Of a DNA stretch of 64,000 nucleotides, positions 13,401-59,045 are shown in pieces. Every line of letters begins with the position of its first letter. Position 1 is the stretch's first letter. Position numbers and translations under genes: made by a program. Source of the stretch: Perkinsus chesapeaki ATCC PRA-425 (Eukaryota; Protista; Perkinsozoa); contig JAAPAO010000098.1 in assembly GCA_013115145.1 (NCBI GenBank), positions 14,519 to 78,518 on the forward strand, in the 5' to 3' direction. The notes beneath the pieces are model-generated. The model made no database searches. It worked only from the letters and a program-made list of their open reading frames with translations, and was not told where the DNA came from.

Positions 13401-14560
13401 CCTCCAATTGACTATATGTGATATCTTTGCATTCAACTATCAAAATATCCACTCGCTTCGACACAACTGCTTCTATTCGAGGAGCCACACTTGCCGCTTG
13501 AGCAAGACATGGACGAGCTTGTGCCTGATAGTTGAATAATAGTCTATTACCCATGTCACGTAAGAACAGCTATGTCGAGATCAGACTGTTATTGCTACTA
13601 ATGCTACTCGACTCTCCATAGGCTATAACATTTGTACTTATTAATCTCAACAACGTATAATAAACCTTATGTCGAGTGATATTTCAATAATTTATAATTA
13701 CGATTCTATAACCATTAGTTTCATCAATAAATTAACAGTTGTTCGATAGTCTATAACAGCTATTCACCCTACAGTCTTCAGAATTCTCCCGCTATTTCCA
13801 GGAAAACTTTTAATAAAAGTTGCTTCGCTCCGCCCTGCTTCCCCCTACAATAAATGCGTCAATAATGCTCCTTTCCCTCTCAACACTCTCAGGCGCCTTC
13901 AGCTGCTTCGGCACTTTCCTCATATCATCTGTTTTCGCTATTAATTTGGATGCCTATGAACTCCAAAATACTGTTTTTCCATCAGTTTCTCCCCCTTACA
14001 GTATCAGTATAATCCACAGTTGCTATTGCCGAATCCATCGCCCGTCTAAGGCCGCTATCAGCTTGGATCCTCTCCGCCCTAGCTGCTGTCTTCTCCTCCA
14101 CTTCCTGCCAATACCTAGATGCCATACCCGTATACTTCACCCGCCACCCACCATTTGCACATCTAACAAAGTCTTTCCCCTGAAAGTTAATCCAGAAATT
14201 TTCCAAAAATTACCCGAAATTTCGTAAAATTTTCCGGAACTTCCCACAGTGTTCACGGAATGCCGAGGAATCCCAAAAACACATCCGAATTCTATGACCT
14301 ACTACCTCTGCAAGGCTTGACTAGCCGGCCCGATATCCTCATCGATAATTCTCGTAACGGTTTGGTATTCTCCTCCAGCATCCTTCTTGGCTCTACTTGT
14401 CATCTCATCCAGCTGCTCTTGAGCATCTTCGAGCTCAGATCTCTTTGCCGCAAGCTGATCTTCTAACGAAGCCTCTGATGGTGATGTCGAGGCCGATAAC
14501 AAAGACAATCTGAGGATTAATACACCATCTCACCATCCACCTGGACGAAGAATATTCCCT
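10410..14560 (-). CDS. RINT1: RINT1/TIP20-family Dsl1 tethering-complex subunit, multi-exon; ends approximate
   Basis: QRFLYHF... and TNRLDRPEWAIARF match the family RF.YHF...TN.LD(K/R)PEW signature; N-terminal coiled coil LEDQLAAKRSELEDAQEQL. Confidence 0.7.
10694..10737 (-). other. 44-nt predicted intron containing tRNA V-loop/T-arm (B box)
   Basis: GTAGGAGGTTCGCGGGTTCGATCCCCAGACCTAAGAGTTATCAG; splicing gives LIKF|YDIKHVVVASLDR. Confidence 0.65.
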
Positions 14561-14569
14561 AAAGACATG

Positions 14570-19442: not shown

Positions 19443-20484
19443 TTACTCAGCCTTGGAATCGTGACCTCTCTTGGCCATACCTTCCTCAACAGCCTTCCTA
19501 ATTACTCCAATCACCGACTCGGGATCGTTGGTCCTAGAAAATGAATTTCAAATAGAATACCACAAAGCGACCAACTCTACCTGAACACGGCACTTCCAGC
19601 AACAATAACATTGGCACCAGCGTCACCGGCTACCACGGACGTTGTGGAATTGAGGCCACCATCAACCGTGATGTCTGAAGGGGACTCGAATGCTACTTAA
19701 AAGAAGTTCTCAAAGCTACCTAGGGAATGACCGTATCGGTCACGAGCTTCCTCGACCTTCCCCATCATATCAGGCATGAACTTTTGGCCACCGAATCCAG
19801 GCTCGACGGTCATAACCTGAAATAAAAAATAGCAAGACGTAGAAAGGCGCTAAAATCTCACGAGAAGATCATCAATCATAATCTCTTTGGCGTCATCTTT
19901 TCGTCCAATGTCAAGCACAGCCTGTACAGCGCTGAATGGCGTCTTCGGTTTAATAGCAATACCGACACGCATGCCTAAGGATTAACAATGAAAGGCAAAC
20001 AATGGTGAGAACGCAACCTACCGTGCGCGCGGATGGCCTGGCAAACCTTCACGCATTCCTCGTGATCCTTGACAGCTTCAATATGGAAATCAACCTATCG
20101 TGAAGGCATTACAGCGAGGAAAGGAGCCTTACTATCGCACCTGGTTGCAGCCACACTTCTTCAGGTCTTCGATCCATTCCATGGGATTCGTCACCATTAT
20201 GTGAGCGTCGAAAAACGGATGAGCATGGCCTGTCTGGGACTCTGAAAAATTGCAATATAAAAGTCGATATTTCCATCTATGTTACCTTGTTTCTTATAGT
20301 ACTTATCGAGGCTCTCAACAACAGGGAAGCCGAACGACAGGTTCGGAACAAAGTGGCCGTCCATGAAATCTAGATGGAGCCAGTCTGCACCACCTTTAAC
20401 GACCTCATCACAGTCCTTAGCGAGATTAGCAAAGTCAGCAGCGAGGACGCTGGGAGCAACAATAGCCTTGCAAGTTGATGACAT
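19443..20484 (-). CDS. RPE: ribulose-phosphate 3-epimerase, multi-exon
   Basis: [75 protein letters not shown]. Confidence 0.97.
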
Positions 20485-21076
20485 TTTGGTAAATGATCTT
20501 TTCATACACTAATTTGAGGATCTAGCGACTGTGACAGAAATCACACAATAATGAGACAGTTAAGTCACATCGGAATGTCTACGCCAAGATACGTCCGCTT
20601 AGCACTTCCTAGCGGACCGGAGAAGTTCGGTTTATGAGGTAATGGTTAAGAGCTTAGGATAATCATTGGGGTTTTGTTGACCAAACCGACTAAGATTGGC
20701 ATTTCGGAATATTAGGAAAATGCTAGAATTGATAAGAGTTCAAGAATCAGCGCCAGCATGCGAAATTGGCCGGGATTGGACGGTGGTAGAAAGAGTTTGG
20801 AATAGACCATAAAGAGTCGGGCTATTATTGTTGGTATGCAGTTTATTATTACCTTGTAGTAGTAGCCTTCGCCGCCCTGTCATCCTACTCGACGGATATA
20901 GCTAGAGGTGTCAGAAAGATACACCGTCCTGTGATAGTATGTAAAGACGCCACTGTTGGTCACAATTCGACATTTGATCCTATCAAGTATACTAGCGAGA
21001 TTGAGAAGGTCGTCTTTGAGGCTCTTGGGGAGAGTAATACCACTTCACACTAGCTAGGTTGGAGTCATTCCGAATT

Positions 21077-21327
21077 GATTCTACCTTACATCTATTCCGG
21101 GTCGATTTTACCTTACATCTATTCCGGGTCGATTTTACCTTATCTATTCCGGGTCGATTTTACCTTATCTATTCCGGGTCGATTTTACCTTAATAAATCT
21201 ATTCCGGGTCGATTTTACCTTAATAAATCTATTCCAGGTCGATTTTACCTTAATGAACCTATTCCGGGTCGATTTTACCTTAATGAACCTATTCCGGGTC
21301 GATTTTACCTTAATAAATCCATTCCGG
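21077..21327. repeat. minisatellite, ~9 copies of a 25-30 bp unit
   Basis: gattttacctt(a/aca/aataa/aatga)...tattccgggtc repeated head to tail. Confidence 0.95.
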
Positions 21328-21535
21328 TATATATTATTTATTATATAATATTATTTCACTTTGCTCAGTTTCGAATAGATTTAATCTTGTTAAATCATTC
21401 TCGAGTAGATTTCACCTTATTGAATAACTCAGTTTCGCATTGACTTTTCATCGTTAAATAAACCAGCCTAAAGTCCTAGTGTCGCATTCTGGAACCAATT
21501 GGCTGAACGTCGAGACTCTCTGACCAACCCATTAC

Positions 21536-22835
21536 ATGTCAAATGCTTTGTCTGCTCTTAAGGTAAGCCTTCGAGTCCCGGTACCATATCACCGTATATT
21601 GACGGCAGCAGCCAAGTTGACTCCCTATTCGCATCTAGCTCATCATTGGCGACACTCAGCAGCAACGGCAGCAGTACAGTCAGGAACTGCCTTGGTGTTT
21701 ATATACTTACCAGTCATCTGGAAGACCAAGAAGATAGAAAGATACTCTTGAAGGTCGAATGAGCACCTCTATTCGGCGCATCATTTCAGATAGTTTAGGT
21801 TGTCCGAGCTCCCGACTATGAAGTTGATACCATTACGGCCACCGCTGAGGTCTACCCGAAGTTGCTGACCGATCCTCGATGCACGGTACCATGGTGCATT
21901 ATCGATGTTATATGTGATGATTATGACTGTCATGATGATGTGGAGGATGATGACGATGAAGATGTGACGGCACCTGTGACAGCGTTTCATATACATGTAT
22001 CGAGGTGATAGAGGGAGGGGCTTGGGTAGCTTTGAAGAAGGGGAAGAACACTCTTCAGGAAGTGCAAAGTATCAATAAAGCACTGAGAAATCTTAGTCGG
22101 GTAATTCGTCTTTTTGGTTAGGATCTTTCAACTTTGGTGTGATCCATTAATGCTCCTCACTAATGGAATCTAGGTCAAATCCTCGCGAAAGGATACGCGC
22201 ATTTCGAAACTGCTGGTAGGAAAGTCTATCTCGAAAGAGAATACAAAGTAACCAGACTTTGGCGGACTAGTGGAGACCGAATTATTAGTTTGGTAGTCGA
22301 CGGTATCTGCCTGAGCAGCGTTGTTTCTATGCAACGCGCGCTTCAATGACAGTCCCCAATGGAGACCCCCATGCGTTCGCGTAAACGCAAGTACCCCCAT
22401 GCGGGTTCCGTAAAATCATTTTTGTTGTACGCAACTGTGAAATCGCCGTTGTGCCCATCTGTAAGTGTCATGCACTGCGATGGTACAAGTAAATTTTTCA
22501 TGTGTTCTTCCACGGTAGGGGTAGAGCGGTTCAGTGTGTTTTCGGTATTACTCAATCCGCACAGGTTCGAATCCCAGTGCAGCGTACCTATGTCTGATCT
22601 TCTGATGAAGTGGTGGTTCCATACATCAGCCTTGGCGGACATAGCCCAGCTATGTGAAGTATTCGGTGCTTTCCTGGCAGCCTTCCACCATGATTATCCC
22701 AATCTAAATCACGGCGATATGAACCCTTCAAACGTTCTCGTTGGCGCTGCTACTGCTGCTGCTGCTTCGAAATCGGAGATGGTAGTCACGTGGGTGGGCT
22801 TTGGATCAAAGCCTTGGATACGCCCGATTCCGTAG
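21536..22835 (+). CDS. protein kinase-like/phosphotransferase-fold protein, multi-exon; structure uncertain
   Basis: GAFLAAFHHDYPNLNHGDMNPSNVLV catalytic-loop-like motif and VTWVGFG; upstream exon AEVYPKLLTDPR. Confidence 0.5.
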
Positions 22836-32800: not shown

Positions 32801-33273
32801 TTGTAGGACTGAAGAATTTGAAGAACCTTTTGCCGATGGGAGAAGATACACTCATAACGAAGATCGTGTCAGAGCTGATGGAGCAGAACGAGAGCTCTAC
32901 CAACAAGCTGACCGAAAGTTACGAATACTTCGATCCACGTGCCAGCACTGTAAGTCATTAAAGTAAGTTTGAATGCATCTTTTCATCAGCTTGCCGGCGA
33001 GTCTCGAAGCCATCGTATTCCTCGTGTTAGAGGATCATTCCACCAAGCCATAGTGTTTATGGTTGGTGGGGGCAACTATGTAGAGCAACACACTCTTACC
33101 GAGTGGGCAAGCTCTAACAAATCACGGGATACTGCTGGCCATACGAAGTAGGCTAATCAACTGTTATGCATCACAGAGTTCGGTATCGCAGGTCTGTAAT
33201 GTATGGAGCGACAGACTTCGTGTCACCATCTGCCTTTTGCGGAGAGCTTGAGACCCTGGGAAACGAGAAGTAG
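29885..33273 (+). CDS. SLY1: Sec1/Munc18-family protein SLY1 (SCFD1), multi-exon
   Basis: LIRMLNL, WKVLVYDK, LRHHGVTL, VYFMDPTRENID, LYDQ|VYINF, RPLLIILDRDMDLATMLHHTWTYQ, LPQMTEMKRSLDEHTNIA, AIVFMVGGGNYVE, YGATDFVSP. Confidence 0.95.
30762..30808 (+). other. 47-nt SLY1 intron made largely of a tRNA 3' half plus T-run
   Basis: GTAGGCTTCAACGCACCCGGGTTCAATTCCTGGTTACGGTATTTTAG; flanking exons give conserved LYDQVYINF. Confidence 0.8.
31246..31323 (+). other. 78-nt GC-AG SLY1 intron with full tRNA geometry (degenerate)
   Basis: TA-GCCT AGAGGTC AGGT D arm, 17-nt anticodon-arm-length segment, AGGTC, GTTGG TTCTAAC CCCAC, CACGGCTA, TTT; exons join VTIRQ|IPIIRAP. Confidence 0.7.
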
Positions 33274-38213: not shown

Positions 38214-39650
38214 TCACGCCAAGAGATCATCGTCGTTGAAGCCCTCCAAAGCCGGGTTTAGATTGCTGATAAGGCCGCAATCCCACACCATTTTGCGGAG
38301 GAGTATTAGGCTGCTGATGCTGCTGCCAGCGAGCCTGCTGCTGCTGAGGAGCTGAGTAAACCTGCTGTGCTGGTCGAGCACCCCATCCTTGTTGTTGGGT
38401 ATTTCTAGGGCCTCCAATACTAGTAGGATAAGGGGAGTTATGCTGTGGTGCAGGGAAACTGCCACCGCTGCTGCTGCTTGTATACGGTGATTGCTGTTGC
38501 TGAGGCTGCTGCTGCTGTTCAACATAGTTCCACGAACTGCTGCTCTTTGCCCAACTTCCTCGCGAATTCGCAGCACTCGAGTATCCGCTGCTCTGAGCTG
38601 ATCGACCGCCGTATGCCGGTGCACTGCTGCCACCAGGTTGCGGCTGCGAAGGTTGTCCTTGGACGTTCCCAACCTGTCCCGCGCTATACTGCTTATCCGC
38701 AGCAGGCCGTGGCGCACCAGGGAAGGGACTCGAAGGTTCGGAATTGAGGATGCTGTCAAAGTCCAAAGCTTCCCCATTTGCATTTCCGCCGAAGATCGCC
38801 GCTGTGCTGATCTCATCATCCTCGAATAGAGTTGCCACTCCGGTGGCCCGTCGAGTGAAACTCGTATCGCCGGCATCAGCGGTGCCCTTGTTTTGCTTCG
38901 CTCCGCTTTTGATTGAATCTGACCGGCCTTCTTTACCACCTGCTGTCACCGGTGAGAAGCTCACGGACGATCCCTGAAAGAACGGAGCCTGGCACAAGTG
39001 CGGGATGACCGAGCTTCAAGTAGAGCTCAGAAGTGAATCCATATGATTCGAAATAGTACATTTCGAAAACACACAAATGCATTTTATCAACGACGAATAG
39101 CATATCCTACCTGAGCGTTCTTGGGATGAGAGCTATCTGCATCAGGAGTGCTGATGGCAAAAACCGCGGCATTCCCCGTATTCGAAATACCGTGTCCCGT
39201 CACCGGTGATGCTGCAGCGTCACCCTGATCAACGTTCAACTGTCGGCCGACGACGGAAAACTGTGACCTACCCAAAAATCATCGGGAGGGGTTTGGCGCC
39301 CCGCAACGTCTGGCTTCTGCCCTGCAATCGGTGACGCTTCGGCTGACTTCGACGCCTAAAAGATTCAATCACTTTCAATTAAAACGAATGAGTTCTGTTA
39401 GCCTTTATTCTCGAAGATCAACTTACGAGGTCGGACCGACTCATAGACCAGCTAGCGAGGAAAATTGGTACCCAAAGCCGGACGCGATGAAGGGTGATAT
39501 ACCGCTAAGTGAGACTCGAATCAAAGCGAAGCAGCTTGAGTCCAGAAGGAACCTCTCCTTGTATTTCCCCTCTCACTCGGAACTTAGTTCCTTTCGAGCT
39601 TTACTTTTAAAGCTTTTTTCAAAGTTCACAAGAAAATCAAGTGTGACACT
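38214..39650 (-). CDS. hypothetical protein with Q/S/G-rich low-complexity region, multi-exon
   Basis: Long ORF with QQQQ tracts; upstream exons such as VEVSRSVTDCRAEARRCGAPNPPDDFW; boundaries approximate. Confidence 0.5.
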
Positions 39651-39859: not shown

Positions 39860-42800
39860 AGGTATTATACCATCATCAACGCACTATTTACCACACAAAC
39901 CACTCCCAAGCCTACAGAGATTCCGACCCACTAACAAACCTACGGCAGCTAGCTTGGCTTCGCTTGAATGCTTTTTCAAAGTATCCTCGTTCGACACCTC
40001 TGCTGTTCTAACGTCATCTGTGATGCCTTCATCGGCGACTTCGCAACTGTCACTAGAGAAATTGGACGGCTTGCGAGGAGCTGCGAGCAAGGAAGAAGTC
40101 TGAAAACCAAGCAACGAGTCCAAAATCGAGATTCCTGAGCTCGCCACCTCCAGTGACTCGGATGCCACGGTGGGAGCCGGTGCAGGCAGCGACGCTTCTG
40201 GCGGCTCGGGGGTACGAACTGTGACAGTAGAGGAAGGTGGAAGAGGCGGTCGGTCTGAAAGGACCATAAGTTGCTCATAGCGCAGCTTTGGGATATTTCT
40301 TAATGGACACACGACCAGGAAATCAACGGCATCCATTACCGATATCCGCTCCAGCATAGCGTCTGTAAGTCTACAGCGTTCCTAGTCGAGGAACTTTTGG
40401 GGAATTTGAAAATCGCAGGTGGTACGAGAATGAGCCGCTGGAAGCCACGGACCCCTCTCCCGTCCCCCTTTCTTTGTGAACTAGAGCAAGCACGGACAGT
40501 TCGATTTACATCTCGCACCATAGCAATTCGGGTCCCCTACGATCTTGCTCGGCCGACAACCAATCCGGACTTCAGTGAAAATATGAAGTAATATTAGTAA
40601 TTAATAGTAGTAGTATAAAGTGATATAATTTATAATATAAATATAAAATATGGTTGTCCGCTCAATTTTCGTTGATGACCAAGATTGATGCAAGCAGCGT
40701 GGCGGAGGTTCATTCTCACCAATCGAAAAATGCCGATAAACCAGCCGATCAGCGTCCCGTTCCCGCAGTCGCGTTATTCACCCACCAGCATTAATCTTCT
40801 CCATCTCCGCCAGCTTCTGGCTCTTCTCGGCGATCTCCTGCTCCTGCGCCGCCGACCGAGACTTGGCATCCTCCAGCGCCTTGTCGGCTTGCTCTGACCG
40901 TTGCTGCTCCCTCGAAAGATTCTCAGTCAGCTCCGTCCTACACAACGACTACCCAAATAGCAGAGGAGGAGTTAATCACCTTTCGTTTCGGAGAGCAACA
41001 ACTTCCTGCCGTAGCTGCTGGAGTTCTTGTGCCAGTCCCGAACTTTTATTTTTCTCAACCTCCAGCTCGGAACGGAGATCTGGATCTGATGGAAAAGCGC
41101 GCCCAATGGAGCTCATCGATAGACCGCGATGGTGATTAGACAGTCCGAGGTATGTTTCGCCAGGAACACGGGGCGACCCGTGACTTTCTATTACACTATT
41201 TCGTACCGCTTCGACCTTGAATCACGAGTGCAGTAAAGTGGAGAGCTACGGTATGATACGCCTTAGAGGACCAAGAATACGTCAGCAGATCTGCTCCCAC
41301 GCCAGAGGTTGAAAAATAAGACGCTTTTGTGATCCCCTGGAGAAACAAGCACAAAGTGTACCAAATTGTAGCTAGCAGGAAGTCCCCAAAAAAATTTTTA
41401 CTGGCCACCGAAGAGAAAAATCTTTACTGCACGATTATGGCTTAAATCTGATTATGATCTTACAGTCGGGAGCTCTTGGCGACCTCGGCGAATCCGATGA
41501 TACCGATCTTGGTGAGAGCGGAGATGACTTAAGATGGTCCAACTCGAAGTTGAGCGCATTCCTGAACAGGGAATACAAAACCTTCCGATACTCGACCCGG
41601 CGATTTCAAAATTAGAAATCACTTGACTGAGAACTTCTCAATGAGATAGATCTGAGCTTGGAACTTCTCAGATTGTTCGAGTTCCAGTGAATTTATATCG
41701 GTACAAGCTAACATTGGGACGCGTCCGATAGCCAAATCAGGAACAACAATCACGGAACACCCAAAATCATAAAGAATCTTCCGCTCTAGTGTGGTGCATG
41801 GTTCAAGCTCGCCGGCATTATCTTACTTCTGGGCCTTAAGCTCTCTCACTTCAGCTCTTAGTCGGAATATAGTTTGCTCAGCATTTCTCAGACTGTCACT
41901 CAGTTCCTGTTCCCGCTCCTCAAACATAGACTGGTCAGGCTCGGCTCGCTCCTAATAAAATCCATCGCTCCGCTCCGCCTTCCAGTTTTTAGATTATACC
42001 ATCTCTTGCATTTCGATGCGCATTCTGTCCCGATCCTCCTCCGCTGCTCTTAGCTTTCCCGTCATGTCCGCCAGAAGAGCCTCCGATTCCCTGACGAGCG
42101 CCATTCATCCCAGAGAAGGTCCCGGGTTCGATCCCCGCTCGGCGCTTTTTGCTATTTATATTTCACTCCACAGTCAATACTTATTCAATACCCGAAACAA
42201 CCCTCATTCCCCTGCAACAGCAGCGGAGCGAAGCAACTCACTCATTCCGTTTTCGTTTCTCGCTGGCATCATTCTCAGCCTCCTCCAGACGTTTCTCCAA
42301 TCCCTCATAATCCTCCTGATCAACCCATCACTCCTCCACCTCCCTCCTCCTCCCTACATCTGTGTGCTTTGCCGTTTTTTCAAAGACCGGCTCCGTCTGA
42401 GTTTTCCTGCTTATTAAATCCAGCTCGTCAGTCTGCGCTGACTCCGGCCGACTCTCGGGTACCTTCCACGAAGCATTCCGCACTTCCGGAACAACTCCAA
42501 AGCTGACCTCCGTTTCCGTGCCCGCGTCCACACCGCTCGGCTTGTCTTCATCCCGCAAAGTTCCTCCGATCGAGTCTCTCGGAGTTCCCCGAGGACTTGG
42601 AGCAACCGGAGGCTTTCCCGCTGCAGCGTTTTGACGAGAAAGAAGGTCAACCTACTTAAGGTCGTGAGTTCGATCACGATCTCGGACGTTTTTACCCGTG
42701 CTAAAAACTCCCTTCGCTGTCGCAATCGAGCTATCTGTTCCTTCTTCGCCTGAAAACAGCCAGATCTCTATCAGCGATATCTGAGATTTCCTCATCGAGT

Positions 42801-44674: not shown

Positions 44675-47600
44675 TTATGCATCCGCAAATTGTCGATCTC
44701 CCGCTTCAATCGAGCCGATTCCTTCAGCTGCGCCGTTCGAGTACTCGCCTGCCCAAACACATTCATCATAGTCTATCACAGTTGGCAAAGTAAGGGTAAA
44801 GGATATGATATTAACTACAACTAGATAACTGAGATTCGGTAATTTGCACACGCTGCACATAACAAATAGCAACTGATGACTTTTGTCAAATAATATTTGC
44901 CCGGGTTGAATTTGTGTATTCGACAAATAAACTAAATTTGCATTACCGAGCCACTTCCGACGGTTTCATAGAGACTCGCCGGGCGAACCAAATATGCATT
45001 AGTACTGGTAGTACTAAGATTTTTCAGAGACTTAACTTACATGACTGTGGAGCTCGTAATATTGGAACAGTTATCGAGAAAACATAACAAGTGACAATGA
45101 TTTGTGAAGGGGTTAATCATATCTACTCCACACTTCCACACTGCTACCATAATAAAAATCTGGTAGAATCAAAATGGAATGATTCACTGATCTAAAATAA
45201 GCTCACTATAAATATTTCAGATGAGAAGATCCATGCAAATATCATCTACATGTACGACTATCAAACACGTAGCATCATCTCTGCCAGAGATTTGAATCCA
45301 GAATCGAGGAATAGAAGGGCGGCAGAGATTCTCTGCCACCCTCTTATTTCCTTACCAACTCGTCATTCACCAGCCCCTTCAGCATCCTCGTATTGGTAGT
45401 CTCATCCTCTCTTTCATCCATCAATTCTCGGAGGACCATCTCCAAATGGGAACACTTCTTCTGTAAAACTCGCACCATCACGTCCAGATCAACCGCACCT
45501 GACGCAAACTCAAATCTCTCGGAAAAGTGTCTCGAGGATTTTCCCGGAAAAATCGGGAAATTGTCCTCCAGAATTGCACGCGCGATCGCCTCGTTCCCTC
45601 CAAAACCAGTAAGACGCATGGCGTCTGGTTTGGCAGGCCATCCAGCCAGAATGTGGCCAAAGGGTCTACTTCATCGCTAATCTCATTTCCATCCACGCCC
45701 CACATGAAAATTCATTCCCCTACAACTGTCCCTTTAATACTGCTAACATTTCTACAGCAGAAAAGGCAGAGAATCGCTCCGAAAGTTTTCTCCTGAGGTT
45801 CATGATCTCCTCACACCGACCGTTTAAGAGCACCTCCTGGTCCTCCCAACTTCAGTTCCGAATTTTCCCTCAGCGAACCACTATGATAAATGTACTCTAC
45901 AGTGCCCGCATATGCGACAGTCCTCCGAAATTTCACAAAATTTCCTCAAAAATTTTTCTTCCTCGCAGTTGTGTGGATCCCCCCTCAACACCCTGTAGAC
46001 CCAGACAACGTCGAAACTCCCAATTGAGCTCACCAGAGCTCATATCTTCCTCCGATACTTCGCTATCTCCGCTGGAGCTAGCCGGCAGTCCTTTACTATT
46101 ATTGGCCAACAACGTCCTCTCTCCCCCCGATGATGTATGATGGTGCGGTTTGGTTGTGTTGATGCCGCTCATCAAAGTGCTTAGCTTAACCTTCTTCCCC
46201 TTCCGAGATTTATGTGTCCCCGACGCTCCACCACCAACACTGCCTCCGTCTAAAACCAAAAATCACTTCACAACATCAACTTCCCGAAGATGAATTCCGG
46301 CCTTCTCGGCAACGTGTTGGAAACAACCACTCACCGATACCAATTTCAAATTTATCGACTCATTCGTAAAAGTCCAGCGCGCCAGAAAATGACAGGGGCT
46401 GTAGCGAAAAAATCGCACGGAAAAACCTTCAAGGCAAAATTTTACACACAGTTGCGGATCTAGATGTGCACGCCAAAGCTTGTACCTGCACGTCCAGCCG
46501 GAGCCATTTCTTCTACAGAGCGACAGCAAGCATTGAATAACAAGGCAGAGGCGATTCACCTCATGCAGAGACTTAATACTAAGGGATGTCATATTATCAT
46601 TCATTAATGTGGATATTATATCGATATTCAGTCATCGAGGCTCGACAACTGAGTTATACAGTTACTAAGGTACACTAGTAGGCAACTCAGTTATACAGTC
46701 ACTAAGGTACACTAGTAGGCAACTCAGTTATACAGTCNNNNNNNNNNNNNNNNNNNNNNNNNNNNNNNNNNNNNNNNNNNNNNNNNNNNNNNNNNNNNNN
46801 NNNNNNNNNNNNNNNNNNNNNNNNNNNNNNNNNNNNAGTCACTAAGGTACACTAGTAGGCAACTGAGTTATACAGTCACTAAGGTACACTAGTAGGCAAC
46901 TGAGTTATATTTTCCCAACGACTATATAACTTTATCATCATCTCTCTCCGAATATCTTTCCCCCTTCACTTACTCGTAGTTCCAATCGTAGCCACAGATA
47001 TATCGCTTCGAGGCGCTCCTGCTGCCGGCATCGCTATCTCTTGCAGCCACGCATCCTTCAATTGCATTTGCAGTTGTTCACATTCATGCCGAGATGCTTC
47101 GAACCTGAACTTACTATATAATCAAACCTCCAGTCGACGATCGGCCCGTCCGAGTCTCCCTAGTGCTCTACGCCACGGAGCCACCGAGGGGCATCAAAAG
47201 TTCCCAGTAGGACTCAGGGGCACCCCCCGCCGGCCCCCCCCCCCCCTACAGCCGCCCCTGGTAGGAATGTGTTCCAGTTTCATGTCCTCAGAGCATACTT
47301 TATGAAAAACATTCCGTCACATCTCCGCACTACGAACTCTCATCGGTATAGATTCCCAAGAGGCAAGATGATTCCATAGTCTACACCCCGCTATAAAAAA
47401 CCGCGCGCCAAGAAATGCCGGCCCCTCCCGCTAGTTCGACTCTACCACCGATTCCCTTGTATAAGAACTGGATAAGTCTATTCTACCGCAAGACATCACT
47501 TGATAAAAAGGTAATGCCCCACAAAGACATCGGCCTCCCTACCGGCAGAACTCCCGGCTTCATTGACCGCCACATTAAGTAACCCAAATTCTGCGAGTGA

Positions 47601-50600
47601 CTTCGTCAAATTTTCAAGTGCGAACGCATTGGCCTCGACCAGTGCCACGGAACAGTTCTTGGAAGTCTCCATCATGTTTAACGACACTCGCGCACCACTT
47701 CTCCAGCCGGGGAGGTTCGAGTGGCTTCAACACCTCCCCCGACCGCCGCCGGCTGTCCCCATGACACAATCCTTTACCTTTGAGTCACTTGCTTCAATTG
47801 GCTCTTCAATTCCGCTACTTCTAATTTCTGCTGCATCATCTCTTGGAATTCATCTCGAGACACCAACAAAGATTCCTCCGTCACACTTGGTGAGTACCTG
47901 ACAAGTGCCACTTCAGCAGCAGCAGCAGCATGAACGAAAGACATGCCCCCCTACCGGTGACAGGGAGCTCACCACTGCACCATATCAATATTCATATACA
48001 CGCTAAATAGTAACTCAGTATTGCTANNNNNNNNNNNNNNNNNNNNNNNNNNNNNNNNNNNNNNNNNNNNNNNNNNNNNNNNNNNNNNNNNNNNNNNNNN
48101 NNNNNNNNNNNNNNNNNNNNNCCCTACCTAGACTTGTGCTATATAGTAACTCAGTATTGCTACCTAGACTTGTGCTATATAGTAACTCAGTATTGCTACC
48201 TAGACTTGTGCTATATAGTAACTCAGTATTGCTACCTAGACTTGTGCTATGGTCTCCTAGACCGGAAGTGTATAACTAACTAAGCTACTAAGGAGTATTA
48301 TATTTCCATAAACCAATAGATACTGTCATTACACGACGACACTAAGATCAGATAGTAAAGGGAGTTCCAAAACTTCCTTAACAACTTTAAGCTTTCTCAT
48401 TTCCTCAACAAATGAACATGCCAGAATGAATCTTTGTGAGATTGTTACCTATAACGTGAAGAAGACGATCAGTTGTCCACGAAGTTTTGAAACTCTCTTT
48501 ACAATAACTAATATATCAATTACATTAATTATATAACATAACACTACAGCATTTCCTCGTCATGTTTCCGACATGCGCACTGTTATTTCCTAGAACTAGA
48601 ACTAGTTCTAATAGGCGTCCTTGTAATAGTTACCTCCAGGCTCTAGACGACAAGATGGTCCTCTCCAAAACTTCTTTCCCTTCAAACATAATCCGCCCGG
48701 GCAACATGCTACTAGTGGCATTGGTGACAGTTGATGAACCTGCCAGGGATCGAACCAAGGTGCACTGATGACAAGTCCAACACCCTAACCAACTAAGCTA
48801 CCTCCCTTCGCTTCAGCGTTATAAACGCCTCCAATAAGCCATGGCTGGTTGGCCGCCTCCTGTCCACATACACACCCTTGAAAGCCTTGATCTATCTCCA
48901 ATTGCAATGAGTTGTTCCTCGACATCGATGTCATCGTCGTAGTCGCCGCGGAGCCCTTTCTCCTCGAACTCGTAGCAGTATAATGACAGTCCGGCACCTG
49001 ACAGGTGGAACAGAATATACTATATAATAGAGTAAGACTTTACAACTACTATTTATAGTTTACTATTACAGTATATATATACATTTCTCTATGTAACGAT
49101 TTTTTGTTCAACCATTACTCAGAGCCTAATTCGAATATCACAATGGTTGATGAGGCATTAGAAAGAGCTCACTAAGAGCTTCAAGTTCGCACCTTACTTC
49201 ACTCGTAACTTTCACGCGCCAAGAAAATATGAGGCATGGGCCATTTTTTCGCATCACCCTGTATGTAATCACACTTTTTTAATAGTGCAGCACTTCTCTG
49301 CCTTCGACCAGGCAGCAGCAAGCGAGTGGCAGTATAGGAGTATTGCTGCGGGCTGAGCAGCCTTAAACGACACAGGTAGTCTGCTATATTCACTAAGCCG
49401 AGAAGGCCTATTGTTATACTAATATTATATTGATATATATTACTAAATATATTATACTATATTATATATGTAAATATATTATATTATAATAGTAATTAAT
49501 TATTAATGTGAACATCACAATGGTATAATATAACCAACTTATAGTATCAATCTGGTACATCACACCACTGCATACGATACAGCGTCACCTTAGGAAAATG
49601 TGTGTTGGCATCTTGCCAGTCAAATTAATAATCCCATGAAAATTGGCCTGCGGAATAATTTTCGGATTAGGATATAAATAGGGGTTTATATATGAGGGGT
49701 TTATTTATCGACCAGTATTCCTGAGCTATGCTACTGTGCTGCATTGCCATAAGACCCAATTCAACCCGTAGACATGCGGATCAAAGAATGCACCGCAAGC
49801 CTTATTCTTCGTCTTCTAGTGGAGCTATTTCTCACTATTGTCACATTTATAATAATACAATATTCCACCTTATATATGCGTAATATTTTCCTATCACATC
49901 TCCGCTTTTCTGGCAACACTACTCGACCCTCCTCGAAGCTGGCTCCACGCCTCCCTCTTACTCCTGCTAGCATCGGTAGCTGCGCCATTATATCAAACAC
50001 CGATCCCGGCGGTATTGCTTTCGTCACCAATGCATTAGGAACTGCTATTCGCCAGGAGCCATCAGACATACTAAGACGCACCAAGGTTCGATCCTCGCCA
50101 GCGGCATTTTTACCTCAATAAAGTGTCTCGCATACACAGCCTCATTCGCCATTCCGGCTCCACCGCATCGACCCCATCGCTGAGCGCCGAGGCCGCTGTC
50201 GGGGAGAGCACCCCACCGTCATGCAGGAGACCTTCCTCGGCCTTCTCAGGGACCTGCCCTACTCCTTGCATTAGACCGTCTGAGCAAATATAAAATATAA
50301 TAAGATCTTGTAATATATGAATAAAATCATTTTACAATGAAGATGAAGTAATAATTCCATAAACAATAGGTATCATGACATGAGCAATAGTAAGTACACT
50401 TATAATAATATAGTACTTAATATAACGTAAACACTACAGGCCACTTTATAGGGAGAATAAGATCAAGTAGTTCGAGCAGCATATTAAGCGAAAAGTATGG
50501 TAAGAACAAGCACAAGCAGTAAGTCTACTAAATAGCGAGCATACTAACCTCAGAGTATCTTCTCTCCCCTCCCAACCCCTTACTTATCAAACCAGTCACC

Positions 50601-53600
50601 TTCCCCCATTCAGCATCGCCATTAAACGATAAACCATGGAAGCAGCCCTCCAACGGTCGTGCCTGTTGAACTAAGTGATTACCCAGACTCATATAGATGA
50701 TGATAAGGCTCACGTAGCTGGCCTCAAATTGAGGGTCTCCAGGTTTAGCGTCATTCTTTCCCGTGCCTTTGTTGCTCTCTGTACACGCCAGTAGCCGCGC
50801 AGGCACCTGCACAGTTGGAAACTGCTTACATTCATCAACATGCGGAAGAAATAAAATTCCGCTGAAAAAATTTAAAAAATTTAGAAAAAAATTTTTCCCC
50901 TCAAACTAAAGCCACCGGTGAAAAAGAGTTCAAAATCTTCGGAATACTTCTACTCAACTGAGTACAACAAACAACCACTTCCGCCCTGCCGATGAATCCT
51001 CAGCGCCCGCAGAGCCGGATCGGTAAAATAGTACTTATTAGAATTCCCCTATTGCATTTTATATTGACGAATGCGATGACAATATCCAATCCTGCACCAC
51101 TATCTCATTCCACTCGTTACCTGATTCTTCGATCGCCACTTAATCGTTAAACCCTTCCATTTCCGCCTGGCAACTTCATCTTCAGCCTCGGTAGCCTCCC
51201 GAGCTGCCCCCGGATGATGACCAGGCAGCCTGCTCCTCAACACCCATCGAGAGCCTCTCTCTAATAGTAACTGAAAAAATACACTCCACCGACGGAGCGA
51301 ACCGCAACAACTTCGGTGAACAGACAAACGGTTGTTGGAACATATAGGCAAGAGCCAGTGTACGCGACATCCCCAGCTGACCAGCAAACACAGTAGTTGA
51401 AAAGGCGCGCAGAGGGTCCAAAAACGCATAACAAACATCTTATATAGTTATGGATTCGGCTGCATGCAATTACTCTACATTGCATTGTGATTAAGTTCGG
51501 TCTCGGCTGGTCTTGAATCATCATAAGGAGTATTCTCGAAGTAGGAGTGAATTATAGTGGACACAAATCATCAAAGTATTCAGCCGATATGGCCGAGGTA
51601 TATAGCAAATGGGAATGCCGCCGTTGCACTTGAAAAATAAATGTATTGTCAACAAGCGCGCGTTTTGGACGACACGAACTGCATTATATATAGCAAACGG
51701 AAATAAAGACGACCACCACACATGCAGCAGGCAGGGCCGTAGGTGACGAAATACTCCTGGAATTTCATCGTACCACCCTTAGTCTCACCTGGCCATTAGT
51801 AATAATACTGGTAGAGGCAACCGGTTCGAAAGGGCAGAGTACTCGACTGCACAGCGACTTGGCAATCTGACAAACCAACAGCCATCTGCGCAAGTGTACG
51901 CATGCATGAGAAGTAGACAAGTACCATAAACCTAGGCCATTCTACTAACCCTGACAAACCAGCAGTCACCATCTTGACCGAGCGCCACGACCCTTGCCCA
52001 AGATGAGATATGCAAAACGATCCCCATCCCAGGGCTCCCATCACTCACCTGTAAAAATTTCTCCGACTGATTGGCAAAACATGCCACCATCACCAACTGC
52101 GGTCTGCCGTATGCATTCTCGTTCTGCGAGGTCTGGTCATATTCCCGAAACACAAACCGTGTTGTCGGGCCAGCCGTACCGCCTACCCCGCAATAATTTC
52201 GTGGCGCAGCGGTCATTTCCCACCTTCGTTGTCCTCCTCTATCTCAACTATGAACTCATTTATATGATAATGATTGAATCTCACTTCGCATACTTTATCT
52301 AGAATCCGCAGCTCTGACATCCTGATAGCGTCCGCACCTGAAAAAAATACATTAAAATGACATCTGTGGGATTCGAACCTGCGCACCTTTCATTTCATCC
52401 TCATCAGTCCATAATGCAAATCCTTCCACATCATCTGACTCTCTCTTTGCCCCTGCATTAGCCCCCTTCCCTCGCTCATCGTATGAAGCATACCGCTCGG
52501 CAGCTTCCTTATCTGCTACTATAATACCAGTAAGAAATGCTATGTACCAGCTACATCTCTCTAATATATGTATCATCACTACCGATATGAAGTACTATTG
52601 CGGTGACGAGTACATCACCCTCGCATGAGGATGATGAATCCTGTAGCGCTCCTTCAGGCGGCCCATGCAATAATCCGCTAGCGAACTATATATAAGGCGT
52701 TCTTTCCACCGAAAGGTCCCCGGTTCAATTCCATGCACCGGAAGATATTGTAATGCGAACTATTTAAGATTAATTTAATACGTGAGAGGACTATTTACCA
52801 GCCCATACATTCGTGGATGCTAGTCTATAATACCAATCGGAAGGTCCCCGGTTCAATTCCCAGGCCTACCATCTTCATCCTCATCCCCAGAGCCCTCATG
52901 ATCGCTAAAAGCGTCCTGGAATGATCCTCCAGACGAGGAAGACCTCCTCCGTCTTTCATCACCAGATGAGGCGTCACTGAAGCTTGAAGTGGCTCTTAAC
53001 ACTAAATACCAAAAATTTTAAACAAAAAACGCTTCGCTCCGCTCAAGTACAATGAACTTCAACGACTACGCTGTCGAGCCCACAACAAAAAGCCCCCTTG
53101 CCTCTCCATCACGGACCCGGTCCGCTAACTCGAAAACGAATACGTCGGATTGCTGTTATTCCTCCACTAGAAGATTCCACGTATTCCCAACAAAAATGCG
53201 AATCATGAATCGCTTCGCTCCGCCCTCCTCCTACATTGCTCTTCATCATCATCAGGTGAGTTCCCCTCTTTAACCACTATAATTTCATCATCTCCCTCCG
53301 CTGTGGTGCTGCTGCCCTCCTGGTCCTCTGCCGGGGGTGCCGGTCGATTCCCCTCCTCCTCCCGCTTCCCCGTCGTCGACTCTTCCCTTTTACTTTCCTC
53401 TGACTCTACTCTAGTATGATGACTGCTACGCCTTCTAGACTGACTTGGTGTCTGATTGGCCATCATGGCCTAAAATAAAGATATCACCACTACTTGGTCC
53501 CATCACTCGTAACGAGCAGGAGAGGTTTATGAGCATTAATCATCGTAGCATAAATCATGATTTTTATTGACATCTGCGAAACTTGATTCTCTTTTCTAAG

Positions 53601-56600
53601 ATTTACCGACTTATTCATAACTTCCAATAAAGCGGATCCTGGCTCATGATTTTTAATTTCTAAATTCTATAACCGTCCAGTAGGATACCATAAGATCGTC
53701 GGCCACTACTTCTCGATAACATTGACGCAGATCCATAAACCTCACTGGCCATAGCTTCATAACTTTTCTGACACCTCTAGCCACCCCTTATGACCTTAGT
53801 CGCCTTATGCAGTGTCTTTTGGCTTTTATTAGCATTCTTCAGTACTTGCCCCATCATAGCATTTCCCATCTTCTTTGATTCCTTAAACATCTTCTTACTA
53901 TAATGTGATGCACTCTTCATAACCTGACAAAAGCACTTCATCCCCGCCTGGACTCACAATCACTTTTCCTCATTGAATGCCTTTCATCACCACAGGGCGG
54001 GCCTATCATTACCAGCAACAGCAAATATCGCATTCGCAAAAGCAGATCGTTCTAAAACGATCCGTCTCCAAAGCCATTCTAGCTTACTCAGCAGGCCTGC
54101 TACCACACCCTAATTCAAGGCGCGTAAGTATTCTATCTCAACGAGGCAGTTCTGCGCGCGCGGAAAATTTCGGGCGGCGCCGGTATCTTTGCACCCAGGC
54201 ATGAAACGGTTGATCGATTTACATATTCTTCCTTGCTGTGTCTTCTAGTACTAAGCTACAGAGTTTTAAGGTCGTACACTCAATAGCAGACGAGATATCG
54301 TTAAAAAACGAAATATTCTATTTCATTGGGGAGGGCTGTATAACAAATCAGCATGAAGGAGAATGAATGCTTTGAAGAACCTATTCCCCCTCATTTACAC
54401 CGTCTCCTATCGGAAGTCACTCTTCACAATCCCCCCTTGCCCGAAGACTTCTACCTCATTTGGATTGGACGGATGCTTATAGTCATGCTTATATGGTCGG
54501 ACTACAGACTCGTACTCTGGTACCTGAACAAGCCCAGTCACTCTCCTGATAATTTCCCGTACATACGCGCGGCAGGTCGCCGCAACCAGTGGTTTATCAA
54601 GCAAAAATGTTACACATGCCGTACACTTGCTTCGCCTAGCAGTTTCAGTTGATGCTCATAACATCATTTTAGCCGATCTCATCCCCTCGACCGCCGTGTT
54701 ATATGATAAGAATTTGTGGAGAGGTTTGGGCGCGCTGTGTTCAGTCCTCAGGGTTGGGCTGGAATCGACATTAATTACCTTTGCTGTAACATCTGCAGGG
54801 CTAAGGATAGTATAATACTCGAAAATTAGGACTTGATTTGCCTCTGAACTCGAGTTATGCGCAGAACACCGTTTATGATAAGGATGTGTGGAGCAGTGTA
54901 TTTCCAATAAGCTTGCGATAGGATAGAATAGGGTATAATATTATATACTCACACCCGTCCCTTGTCATTTTATATAATAATAAGAATACAGCTATAGCCC
55001 TTGAAGAGCAAGCTACCACATGAAAGGATTAAATAAAAGGGGATATGATAGTTCTATATAATTATATGTATGATGATAAGTCCTATACAACAGATATCAA
55101 TTGAAGGCATCCCCTGCCCTCATTCTACCTTCGGTAAGCTGCTCGCTACGTTATCCTTAAGTGAACCTCCATAAGCTGACAATAATAATCATCATGAATG
55201 TCCAGATCACCCCAAAATCCACATCACACAAAACCCGAATAACGCCTACGCTATTCATCCTACAGCTCTCTTACAAAGGGAAATTTATCAGCTCCGATGC
55301 CCTAGAAGAGTTGACAGGATTGGACGACATATAGCTTAAGAACAGCACATGTGGACTAATCTGCTAAGTAAGTAATCTACTAAGTCTCAGTTAATTCCTA
55401 TGACAGGTACATTTTAGTAAGCTCGTGCAGATCCCCAATTGACGGACATTTGGTCCCCCTATCAACTCCCTCTATCCTCAGTCCCCCTATCAACTCCCTC
55501 TATCCTCAGTCCCCCTACAGCAACTCCCTCTATCCTCAGTCCCCCTATCAACTCCCTCTATCCTCAGTCCCCCTATCAACTCCCTCTATCCTCAGTCCCC
55601 CTATCACCTCCCTCTATCTTCAGTCCCCCTATCAACTCCCTCTATCTTCAGTCCCCCTATCAACTCCCTCTATCTTCAGTATAGTACCTTCATCCTCCGC
55701 ATCAACCTTATCATGCTTATCAACTCTCTTCGATCGTTCCTGCTGTTGTTGTTTCTTTATTTCCATCGCCATATTCTTGAATGCATTGCCGTCCACCCAA
55801 GAGTAATGAAGATGCCTAAAAATAATTAATTAAATACTTTCTTCAACCATTCCAAAACGTGGCCCTAACCAACTGCCAGACGAACTAGCCAAAGTCACCT
55901 TCGTACGATATTCCGTAAGATAGGGAACCTTGTGCTCAGAATCAAGTAGTAGGGCATCATCGATTAATAGCAGACCCAGCACGATCTCTCCGAATATATA
56001 CATTCACTCTAGGGCAGCGCCTGGCTGGCAAATGGCCCCCTGATCCGAGCAGACTAGCAAGGTGAAGCAGTATGGCTACTATTTATAGCGACTCCAAAGT
56101 GTAACAACAACTATCTCCGTTGAGTGTGGGAATATTAATATTACCTGGCATTCTTGGGGAGGTTATCAATGGGGATATAAGTCGGCTGTGTGAGGTCGTT
56201 TAAAATATTATAAAGCTTGCCAACAGTCGACTAAAATGACACAGCCAGGGATCGAACCCACGACCTCTTGGTTAGCAGAACTCACCTTTTCGCCCTTGAT
56301 CTTTAACTCATCTAACCATATAGAGAGTCCTCCTCCACAAGTAAACGGCAGCTTAGACCACCTGACACAGCGTCAATTATAACCGAAACCAATTCCCATC
56401 CTTTTAAACAATCGGTGAGATTGTCCCTCCACGCATCTACGGTATCTCCTGTCCCGTGGTTGGCCGTTTAGTTCCCCTTCTACCTTTTCCCGTGTGTCCC
56501 TTTTTCCATAGCGATACTTTCTGACCGATGCTTTATTCGAATCCCACCGGTGTGCTCCACAAGAGACTCACCAGTAATGGCGCATATCACTGATAAACTG

Positions 56601-59045
56601 TCTGAAAAGAATTGCCGTCGCCGAGGATCGAACCTGGGACCCCCTACTTATAGTGTATAGACGCATCGTTCTAAGGAAGTTCCTCTCTTTATTGAACTGA
56701 AAAGCCTCCTGTGGCGAGTCCACATAGGATAAACCACTCCACTCTTCAGAAGAGCTAGGCTCCAAAAACTGATAGAAAAACCATAAAATCGAATCATCAA
56801 GCTCATCTATCTCGCAGCGTTAAAGCAACGACAACACTGATCTCTCCGCCACAGAACTTCAAACTGCACACCGATTGCACCGATGTGCACTCTTCCATTA
56901 TTATATAATAACAAAGTGAACTATTTTACTGTCTGAAAAACAACTGTAGCCGATAATATCATAATAGTAAGCAGAACCAGTCGCGTTGAGTTTAATAAGC
57001 AATCCTTTTACCCATTGTACGTATACAGCCCGTTGCGGTAGCATGCATCACTTAATAGTAATAATTGTGGAGTAGGAACGCAGTGGAATTACTAGTACTA
57101 GGGTCACTATAAGCCCGTCCAGATCTAGATCTGCCGTTTCGGTCAGCTTTATTTGCATGAAGCCTAGAATCGGCACACCACCCCTATCGGAGAAAAGTAT
57201 CTTTTCTTATAACAGATTACTCAATTACGCATCCTCCCCCTGAAATATGCCAAACCCGCCAGCCTTAACTGAGCAGCCTTAAAGACAACCCAACGAAAGT
57301 GGAGAGAGATGGAATTATTCTACCCCTGTGGCCCTACCGAGATACTTCTCAAATAACTTGCGTATTCTAAATAAGTCCATCACCGATTCCCGGCCCCCAG
57401 TGCACACTCCTCCCTCATATTACCGGTCCCTGCTGAATGCACGGTGCCATGAACAGCCCCTGCAAAAAAATCTTAAAAGCTCTCGTTGGGCTCTTCAACG
57501 GCGGAGCGCTGTCATCCATCCCACTGATACGCGACGGCGACTGGGTGAATCTAACCACCAAAAGTCACCGAAAAAAGGTTGCTTCGCTCCGCCTTTTTAT
57601 TACAGATTAATTGATATACTTTCAATCCTGAGCTGCAGGCCGGCCATTATGAAATCCCACCATCCTAGCTCGAGATTCCGCCGAAGCGATCGCTTAGATT
57701 CCGCATCGACATTGCTGACTGCCGAGTTGATATGCTGCTCCAGCAGTGCCTCTCGCTGCGCTAATGCAACCTAATAATAACCAAGCCTTCCATGCCACAA
57801 TAAGGAACAAATAGAATCGTTTAATACTAATACAGATAATTATTCAGCCGTCTCCCCATTACCCCAGAGCTCTTGAGGACTACTGGAGGGGATGTTCCCA
57901 TGCAGCTGCCTGTATGTTACTACATGCTCTACGGTTAGTATCGATTGCGGAATGTGTCGCAGCCTATTCGCACCATCAACCCAAAATCGAAAGAAACCTC
58001 AAGCAATCAAAGACTCGTCCCTATCCCCGACTGCCAATATATAACGCATTCATTTCTATGTATCATCTGCCGCTATAGGTAGCCGCCTGTTTGCCCTCCA
58101 ATAGAGGAAGATTCAAAATAGGTTACCTTGCAGTTCCATTCGACATCACCATACATATCATGTACAGTACAATCAAGCTCCAGAGATGGTATTGTAATAC
58201 AAACCTTGCACAGCAGTTACATTATATCGATTACAACAGCGACCATCAACTCACCGGTTTATACCGTAACTGGGTCCACGGGATCTTAACCACTGCCATA
58301 CTGCAATACGCTCGAGTGATCTGAGGAGGCATCGTCGAATACGAAGTTACAATCGATACGATGGCCGCCGGAGTGTGAGAGAATAGATCACATTTCAAGA
58401 GGCCGACCGAGGGTCTCGACATCCCAGTGCTTTAAATGACACCGTTTATGACCTTGTTCGTTTGACAAAGATGCCTTTTCGAAAGCTTTAAGAAGCTCGA
58501 AGCACGGAATCGAAGGCCAGCGAGGAAGATTTGATACGAACTGGTAATATCAAAGTTGCGAGATTGTTCTTCCCTATTGTGGTTTTCCGTCATCGAACCC
58601 TCCAATCAACGTATTCCGACTTCCCCATTATTAATACTAGCTAATAAAGGTAAGTGATAGATGCTTAATCGCTTAGCTACCTCGGTCGTGTAGGGCAGAA
58701 TGGTGTCAACCCACTCCTTAATGGCGTCAATTTCAAGCTCGAAGGCATGTAAGGTGATCTCGCCCGACATCAGAGACCTGCAAGAGGGCTCGCTGGGGTG
58801 GGGACGGGTATAGGTTATTACGCAGAGACTTGGTCATATTCCAATCCACGGATGTACTTTTTCAAGTACCCCATAATGGTGCTTTTGTAAAGGTAAGATG
58901 TCATATTTATACATGCAGCAACAGCACCGTCGTCGACAAAAGCTCAAATACTGAAAAATGAAGATTCGCCCAAGGTCACTCAGCTGACCTCAAAAATATC
59001 TTTTATGAGACATATTCTACAATAGAGTCGCGTAAATTCGATCAT
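44675..59045 (-). CDS. very large Chorein-N (VPS13/ATG2/BLTP-like) gene; N-terminal assignment good, 3' extent speculative (may be 2-3 genes)
   Basis: 5' exons SLMSGEITLHAFELEIDAIKEWVDTILPYTTE|ITRAYCSMAVVKIPWTQLRYKP and WDFIMAGLQLRIESISINL match Chorein_N; contiguous minus-strand exons continue to ~44.7 kb. Confidence 0.55.
46647..46908. repeat. 37-bp tandem array spanning an N gap (46738-46836)
   Basis: aact(g/c)agttatacagtcactaaggtacactagtaggc on both sides of the gap. Confidence 0.95.
48007..48250. repeat. 36-bp tandem array spanning an N gap (48027-48121)
   Basis: atatagtaactcagtattgctacctagacttgtgct repeated. Confidence 0.95.
48740..48801 (-). other. 62-nt predicted intron that is a near-complete tRNA body (A box, Thr-UGU-like loop, B box)
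   Basis: GTAGCTTAGTTGGTTAGGGTGTTGGACTTGTCATCAGTGCACCTTGGTTCGATCCCTGGCAG; removal joins NAEAKG|GSSTVTNATSSMLPGRIMF in frame. Confidence 0.75.
50071..50113 (-). other. 43-nt predicted intron = antisense tRNA 3' end with oligo-T
   Basis: Plus strand CCAAGGTTCGATCCTCGCCAGCGGCATTTTT; splicing joins MRDTLL|SMSDGSWRIAVP. Confidence 0.75.
52338..52386 (-). other. 49-nt predicted intron = sense tRNA 3' end plus T-run
   Basis: GTGCGCAGGTTCGAATCCCACAGATGTCATTTT...TTTCAG; joins DEDEMK|GADAIRMSEL. Confidence 0.75.
52702..52738 (-). other. 37-nt predicted intron with antisense tRNA T-arm
   Basis: GTGCATGGAATTGAACCGGGGACCTTTCGGTGGAAAG; joins VRITISS|ERLIYSSLADYCMG. Confidence 0.65.
52820..52869 (-). other. 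50-nt predicted intron with antisense tRNA T-arm
   Basis: GTAGGCCTGGGAATTGAACCGGGGACCTTCCG...ACTAG; joins DEDED|ASTNVWA. Confidence 0.65.
55453..55680. repeat. 28-bp minisatellite, ~8 copies
   Basis: gtccccctatcaactccctctatc(c/t)tca repeated. Confidence 0.95.
56231..56285 (-). other. 55-nt predicted intron = sense tRNA 3' half plus TTTT
   Basis: GTGAGT...CAAGAGGTCGTGGGTTCGATCCCTGGCTGTGTCATTTTAG; joins IKGEK|STVGKLYNIL. Confidence 0.75.
56602..56647 (-). other. 46-nt predicted intron = sense tRNA 3' half plus T-run
   Basis: GTAGGGGGTCCCAGGTTCGATCCTCGGCGACGGCAATTCTTTTCAG; joins DASIHYK|QFISDMRHY. Confidence 0.7.

Follow-up and report, generated by a model that had tools for sequence, protein, structure and literature searches.

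The intron signals that are read by small nuclear RNAs (snRNAs), such as the U12-type branch site or the fused branch-point/3' splice-site motif of Giardia and Trichomonas, act in the sense direction only and pair with an snRNA. B boxes are the DNA sites for TFIIIC in other eukaryotes, and the stability of the mini-hairpins formed by d(GCGNAGC) heptamers is well established. Introners are known from Micromonas, Aureococcus, fungi, dinoflagellates and Amoebophrya (PMC7789003). Here we analyse a 12-mer, GCGGAGCGAAGC, that recurs in a stretch of 64,000 nucleotides from Perkinsus chesapeaki ATCC PRA-425 (assembly GCA_013115145.1, contig JAAPAO010000098.1, positions 14,519 to 78,518 of the forward strand), referred to below at its full length as the window. 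The full word has 13 bp, R followed by GCGGAGCGAAGC, and we propose, with a probability of roughly 45%, that it may be a selected, orientation-free functional recognition site on double-stranded DNA, since every position of the core is constrained, both directions appear usable and orthologous copies are retained amid randomised surroundings. The reader of the 13-mer would most likely be a sequence-specific DNA-binding protein. The word exceeds chance, joins a sharp core to a loose tail, lies mid-intron in both directions and is kept in two orthologous introns by lineages on either side of the deepest split in a three-way comparison, with loss in one lineage. A full-text search of the literature found no paper describing this motif.

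Copies in the window and across the genome

The original prediction was of eight perfect copies of the 12-mer, against about 0.01 expected by chance, and it proposed a genome-wide count. All eight positions were found again; dinucleotide shuffles of the window gave an expectation of 0.02 copies, and none of them reached 8. Six of the eight exact copies are on the minus strand and two on the plus strand. Allowing up to two mismatches, the window contains 16 matches compared to 3.8 expected. The count over the whole assembly (41.7 Mb in 3544 contigs) gave 880 exact copies, compared to 3 for the reversed control, and 1622 matches with up to one mismatch, compared to 152 for the control; the sites number roughly 900 exact and about 600 near-exact ones genome-wide. 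Two variants had also been put forward, at ~10604 and ~41965. The second is a good copy, with a single mismatch, at 41967, but the first (site 10607, GCGGAGCGTAAA) differs from the 12-mer at three positions, is unconvincing and was not counted as a family member. The copies of the window, and the one host gene that could be named, are as follows:

29885-33270, plus strand: SLY1 gene (Sec1 family), recognised by Pfam Sec1 on three exon open reading frames (ORFs) and by tblastn with the P. olseni SLY1 protein P0182
13822-13833, minus strand: exact 12-mer, sense, in candidate intron 13792-13848 (57 nt)
31761-31772, minus strand: exact 12-mer, antisense to SLY1, in intron 31721-31792 (72 nt)
32007-32018, plus strand: exact 12-mer, sense to SLY1, in the class I intron 32002-32051 (50 nt; class I is defined below)
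38895-38906, minus strand: exact 12-mer, sense, in candidate intron 38887-38936 (50 nt)
41967-41978, minus strand: one-mismatch copy GCGGAGCGGAGC, sense, in candidate intron 41952-41999 (48 nt)
42223-42234, plus strand: exact 12-mer, antisense to a minus-strand host, 7 nt past a GTGAGT 5' splice site (42241)
53031-53042, minus strand: exact 12-mer, sense, with class I tail, in candidate intron 53002-53050 (49 nt), borders not fixed
53212-53223, minus strand: exact 12-mer, sense, with class I tail, in candidate intron 53167-53234 (68 nt), borders not fixed
57581-57592, minus strand: exact 12-mer, sense, in candidate intron 57551-57603 (53 nt)

The host strand was inferred for each copy, as plus for SLY1 and as minus for the other hosts, the latter from ORF joining and GC skew. 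This agrees with the six sense and two antisense copies of the original prediction, the antisense ones being those at 31761 and 42223. The further claim that the copies always lie in introns stands in part. It is proven for 31761 and 32007 by the orthologous protein and a three-species alignment, and the SLY1 intron 32002-32051 reads GTTAG, motif, tail, CAG. The copies at 13822, 38895 and 57581 and the variant at 41967 lie in candidate introns whose removal joins open frames: of 35 and 19 codons for 13792-13848 (GTAGG..ATAG, with a T-rich stretch past the motif), of 56 and 223 codons for the intron at 38895, where the motif is 8 nt from the 3' splice site, of 55 and 44 codons for 57551-57603 (GTAAT..GTTAG), and of 35 and 42 codons for 41952-41999. 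For 42223, 53031 and 53212, which lie in non-coding stretches, the borders are not fixed; the candidate intron at 42223 has 3' border options at 30, 86 or 104 nt, and the copies at 53031 and 53212 are 181 nt apart and in the same direction. Pfam, applied to 36 ORF pieces around the copies, recognised SLY1 alone, and a homologue search with the long exon 38217-38945 found nothing.

Each antisense copy in the window is paired with a sense copy about 250 nt away in the same gene (31761/32007 and 41967/42223), and both pairs would be complementary in the pre-mRNA, one of them with a G.U. These divergent pairs had suggested a bidirectional or core promoter, a candidate that was rejected because the SLY1 copies are in mid-gene introns; nor are the ORFs that follow the first downstream ATG longer than those at random positions, which speaks against a 5'-UTR element as well.

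The gaps (runs of N) at 46738-46836 and 48027-48121 lie more than 4 kb from every copy in the window and bear only on the stated distance between the copies flanking them. Two contigs (C1:1-73 and C139:1-73 of G000; loci L001 and L036) have identical first 73 nt, the motif copy included, and this common start probably reflects overlap in the assembly or the edge of a haplotype.

Core, tail and loop bases

The anatomy of the element was studied in 80 loci around listed copies, with 91 copies analysed. A purine (A or G) occupies position -1 in 89 of the 91, and the word is therefore really 13 bp long; otherwise the upstream flank carries no information. The core is about 95% identical per site, as calculated from the genome-wide ratio of exact to one-mismatch copies, and the tail positions carry only 0.2-0.5 bits each. 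In 34 of the 91 copies (~37%), which we call class I, the core leads into a less strictly kept tail (about 20 nt), which gives way to a T run and then to a 3' splice site. The order of this tail is G, A/T, TTCAY, G, a TTTAC-like block, the T run and YAG, with the T run beginning mostly 14-16 nt past the core and, in a minority, at 8 nt. When GTARG is found 4-19 nt upstream, a class I copy makes up a whole intron of 45-55 nt.

In pairwise comparisons, the copies are homologous only between the motif start and about +40 (83-92% identity), and not upstream. The original prediction had proposed aligning the flanks as a check for a larger repeat or target-site duplications: no larger repeat surrounds the copies, and their flanks are unrelated beyond ~40 nt, indicating that they are not transposon copies. 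Neither terminal repeats nor an inverted partner were found, target-site duplications having been checked by eye only. All the copies analysed start at the same base, and none is truncated at its 5' end.

The 12-mer contains overlapping GCGGAGC and GCGAAGC heptamers, from which the original prediction had proposed a structural element of two GNA mini-hairpins. Formed in single-stranded DNA during transcription or replication, these would act by their shape and not by their sequence, and would work in either direction. However, the loop-N positions are no freer than the stem: with both of them freed, GCGNAGCGNAGC gave 1037 matches compared to 880 exact ones, with 70 in the control. This represents about 90 extra copies above the control, or ~45 per position, compared to an average of ~49 per position in the one-mismatch count. 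Moreover, the two hairpins overlap in a GC and are thereby mutually exclusive, the purine that flanks the 12-mer at -1 is fixed as well, and the introns show no unusual folding. A plain GNA mini-hairpin is not supported by these sequence comparisons, and we regard an action by shape as most improbable.

Conservation and direction within introns

The SLY1 gene of the window is collinear with those of P. olseni and P. marinus. The P. olseni and P. marinus proteins are 87.7% identical, compared to about 55% for either of them against the window exons as aligned, and the amount of DNA that can be aligned is twice as great for the P. olseni-P. marinus pair as for the window paired with either species, which places the window lineage as the outgroup of the three. 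Both motif introns, 31721-31792 and 32002-32051, occupy positions common to the window lineage, P. olseni and P. marinus, and so are not recent gains. In P. olseni (three assemblies: L093, L095 and L099), both introns keep the motif in the same place and direction. The sense copy (32007) is retained at 12 of 12 positions, with its tail partly conserved, and the antisense copy (31761) at 11 of 12, in an intron (46 nt compared to 72 nt) of which the remainder is unalignable. In P. marinus, both introns are present and the motif is absent from both, an exact copy being found elsewhere (L096:23362). The conservation in orthologous introns that had been proposed as a check is thus found for both copies in P. 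olseni and for neither in P. marinus. Since the window lineage is the outgroup, both SLY1 copies date to the common ancestor, and the pattern suggests that selection maintained them in two lineages, the third having lost them. For most SLY1 introns, identity between P. olseni and P. marinus is at the level of shuffled sequence, that is, saturated. This cross-species comparison covers two sites in one gene, SLY1. Beyond the genus, metagenome contigs scanned with a 20-mer yielded one match, in a non-intron context and at chance level.

The introns that house the motif are very short. Those of SLY1 in the window are mostly 30-50 nt long, and annotated proteins of P. olseni and P. marinus allowed 47 introns to be delimited exactly, most of them 45-53 nt in length. 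In sense and antisense introns alike, the 12-mer follows the 5' splice site and precedes a stretch that is T-rich or resembles a branch point. A 5' splice-site pentamer is present 2-20 nt upstream of 27% of the copies when read in sense and of 19% when read in antisense, compared to 9% of random positions, and the sense and antisense sets alike yield GT..AG introns of about 43-51 nt. A composition test assigned 30 copies as sense-like and 13 as antisense-like, with 2 and 4 in two nonsense configurations. Where the genome sample holds pairs of motifs, 5 run in the same direction and 6 in opposite directions; the near-equal numbers are a further reason for rejecting the promoter. One gene can carry several copies, as in the three introns of locus L071 or the two at 53 kb in the window. 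Tests based on ORF joining and on spanning ORFs, applied genome-wide to tell introns from exons, do not discriminate in this genome. The class I tail accompanies sense-located copies only and never antisense-located ones, which ties the tail to the host strand and leaves the core free of it. The tail is more than a set of generic intron signals, since no such fixed tail occurs in the 47 P. olseni and P. marinus introns.

Such a constant location, with the 5' splice site on one side and the TTCAY/T-run/YAG tail on the other, would be expected if a splicing factor or regulator bound the sense 12-mer in the pre-mRNA, immediately ahead of the branch-point region. The motif would then mark a set of co-regulated introns, consistent with the roughly 2:1 sense bias and with the several motif introns of single genes, and the antisense copies would be by-products or have another role. 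The antisense SLY1 copy argues against this, as it is kept at 11 of 12 positions in P. olseni in an otherwise unalignable intron, and antisense-located copies are centred in their tiny introns as neatly as sense ones. Furthermore, the word shows no complementarity to the 5' end of this genome's U2, to U6 or to the spliced-leader (SL) RNA, and the copies have no common RNA fold. We therefore consider a splicing element read in RNA to be fairly unlikely.

Three related candidates were also rejected. The intron half of the SL RNA, suggested by an Sm-like ATTTTTG, was discarded because the SL RNA gene (L084) does not contain the motif; a copy of the 3' end of U6, or base-pairing with the 5' end of U2, because the genome's own U6 and U2 do not match; and a conserved RNA hairpin or acceptor-like stem because z-scores were between -0.9 and +1.0, with stems at shuffle level. 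As for the spliced leader itself, the Perkinsus SL exon occurs 16 times exactly in the assembly. The copies at L081, L082 and L085-L088 (G000 contigs C8, C476, C553, C1068 and C1631) are followed directly by a stretch resembling a 5' untranslated region and by a start codon; they resemble leader remnants that retroposed mRNAs would leave, and L084 looks like a true SL RNA gene.

The class I copies raise another possibility, that the motif is what remains of a self-copying mini-intron family, introner-like or spread by reverse splicing, of which the 12-mer would be the best-kept part and without function. In its favour, the 34 class I copies share about 40 nt, essentially the whole intron, and copies cluster in neighbouring introns. 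Near-identical whole introns are found for this subset only, however. There is no homology over a whole element with defined termini, as no information exists upstream of -1 or beyond about +40, and instead of recent gain, both SLY1 motif introns are shared by the three lineages in the one gene compared. In addition, conservation is much stronger in the core than in the tail, core-only copies are found in antisense introns without the family tail, neither terminal repeats nor upstream homology were found, and neutral intron sequence is saturated at this divergence. The second intron-forming family of the original prediction hence describes the ~37% of copies that are near-identical mini-introns, but not the ancient intron 32002-32051 of SLY1 or the core where it occurs without its tail. 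A functionless relic of copying seems unlikely to us.

Other repeated or palindromic blocks were observed in the SLY1 introns. Intron 31898-31945 carries a palindromic ATCGATCG..GATCGAT block that is kept in the three Perkinsus lineages (L095:11762-11811; L096:12112-12163); within the window, its 8-mer shows no enrichment. In both P. olseni and P. marinus, the third SLY1 intron (L095:10360-10411; L096:10698-10745) carries GCACGCATGCGCA, a GCATGC-type palindrome, which shows no enrichment in the window either. The second SLY1 intron of P. marinus is filled by a tandem array of 406 nt (L096:10224-10629). Tandem arrays in the window are found at 21090-21310 and 55453-55665, with units of 27-30 nt and 28 nt, respectively.

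Pol III relics, a putative reader and related systems

Tiny Perkinsus introns also house relics of tRNA genes, and the 12-mer might, in parallel to these tRNA T-arm relics, be a fragment or reduced remnant of some abundant small RNA or of an RNA polymerase III (Pol III) gene. The window contains 13 B-box-like tRNA relics (GGTTCRANYC), at these positions:

5735, 10714, 22564, 28296, 30781, 42125, 48747, 50085, 52370, 52722, 52850, 56249 and 56625: B-box-like relics

Genome-wide there are 4062 such relics, compared to 1628 in the control, and 21 of them lie within 400 nt of 12-mer copies, compared to 6.5 expected, a threefold enrichment; in the window, the relic at 42125 is 98 nt from the copy at 42223. 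Real tRNA genes occur in P. marinus introns as well: tRNA-Arg(TCG) (L096:20461-20534) and tRNA-Ile(AAT) (L096:22189-22262) are located within a protein gene (19868-22629), on the same strand, and their T-run terminators run into CAG and GTTAG, apparent 3' splice sites. The class I tail ends in the same manner, with a T run at a near-fixed distance from the core.

These parallels favour an origin from a Pol III transcript, yet no source RNA was found among the SL RNA gene, U6, U2, 5S and positions 2310-3399 of the large-subunit rRNA (LSU). The motif is absent from 5S and from LSU 2310-3399, the small-subunit rRNA (SSU) and the remaining LSU not being assembled; the ribosomal DNA is barely present in the assembly, as LSU ~2310-3399 and a weak SSU fragment only (G000 contigs C2713, C3219 and C1632; L101-L105). 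Rfam gave no family at E<=1 and ARAGORN no tRNA, no B box follows the motif at tRNA spacing (20-70 nt downstream), and no acceptor-like stem rises above shuffles, so that neither a tRNA-like fold nor a pair of A and B boxes was detected by these scans. Compared with the B-box consensus GGTTCGANTCC, the core does not match, and the tail (GAAGCGATTCA) matches at 7 of 11 positions, without the TT. The common start base of all copies, none of them 5'-truncated, also argues against snippets of a longer RNA, an origin that we judge very unlikely.

The DNA-level binding element of the original prediction is the reading that we favour: the word appears in both directions, all 12 (13) of its positions are constrained, and it is retained in orthologous introns both ways. 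In the mechanism that we propose, the 13-mer would be kept by purifying selection and lodged in the only free slot of the 30-55-nt introns of a compact, intron-rich genome. This slot would be the interval between the 5' splice site and the branch-point or pyrimidine region, where the motif could face either way. The sense-only class I tail (GATTCAYG, TTTAC, T run, YAG) may serve host splicing or reflect the copying of whole introns. Candidate roles for the site would be chromatin or architectural marking, like that of extra-TFIIIC (ETC) sites, intragenic regulation, or the specification of origins.

Several points weigh against a DNA recognition site. The bias of about 2:1 towards sense (30 compared to 13) suggests an RNA-level or intron-copying component, and the conserved, sense-specific tail on one third of the copies suggests the same. 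About half of the sampled copies are not assignable to intron, exon or intergenic sequence without gene models. The conservation rests on two sites in one gene, and the loss in P. marinus means that single sites are dispensable. Finally, no protein is known to bind the word. A second layer on top of the core is evident from the sense bias and from the restriction of the tail to sense copies; it consists either of splicing constraints on that side or of copied mini-introns.

A bolder extension of the DNA-site reading is that Perkinsus keeps, and perhaps builds, minimal introns as carriers of strictly conserved short elements, such as the 13-mer and the tRNA B-box relics. The 13-mer would then dock a putative factor, for example an architectural, origin-marking or Pol III-associated one, the need for intragenic sites would explain the persistence of introns, and class I would be the smallest self-propagating intron family known (~45-50 nt). 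We hold this extension to be possible, though on balance unlikely. If the 13-mer is indeed a selected site, about 1,000-1,500 non-coding sites would be under selection across the genus, in a parasite of oysters and clams that matters commercially. To our knowledge, almost nothing is known about gene regulation in Perkinsus. Such a set would also bear on why introns persist, as introns of 30-55 nt would be kept partly as housing for a functional DNA word, and a subset of the motif introns resembles a copied mini-intron family. The motif offers a handle for finding the factor, and could possibly aid the design of Perkinsus expression vectors and the prediction of introns.

How does this element compare with the systems described at the outset? 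Like introners, class I consists of many near-identical sequences, each of them a whole intron in unrelated genes. Unlike introners, the part shared in Perkinsus is only about 40 nt long with a hard core of 12 nt, terminal and direct repeats were not detected, the core can stand alone and in antisense, and the SLY1 introns are at ancient positions with the motif kept across species. The 13-mer resembles the signals read by snRNAs in its length, its conservation and its set position with respect to the splice signals of very short introns; it differs in being conserved in antisense too and in matching neither U2 nor U6. The 12-mer holds two of the heptamers that form GNA mini-hairpins, but it is as constrained at loop-N as elsewhere, and the sequence gives a single-stranded role no support. 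The 12-mer is not a B box either, it lies outside any tRNA-like fold, and its reader is putative, whereas in other respects it is like the ETC sites and B-box relics: these are short, strict DNA words with hundreds to thousands of dispersed copies, in either direction and conserved between species, and the B-box relics occupy the tiny introns of this very genome, where they co-localise with the 12-mer.

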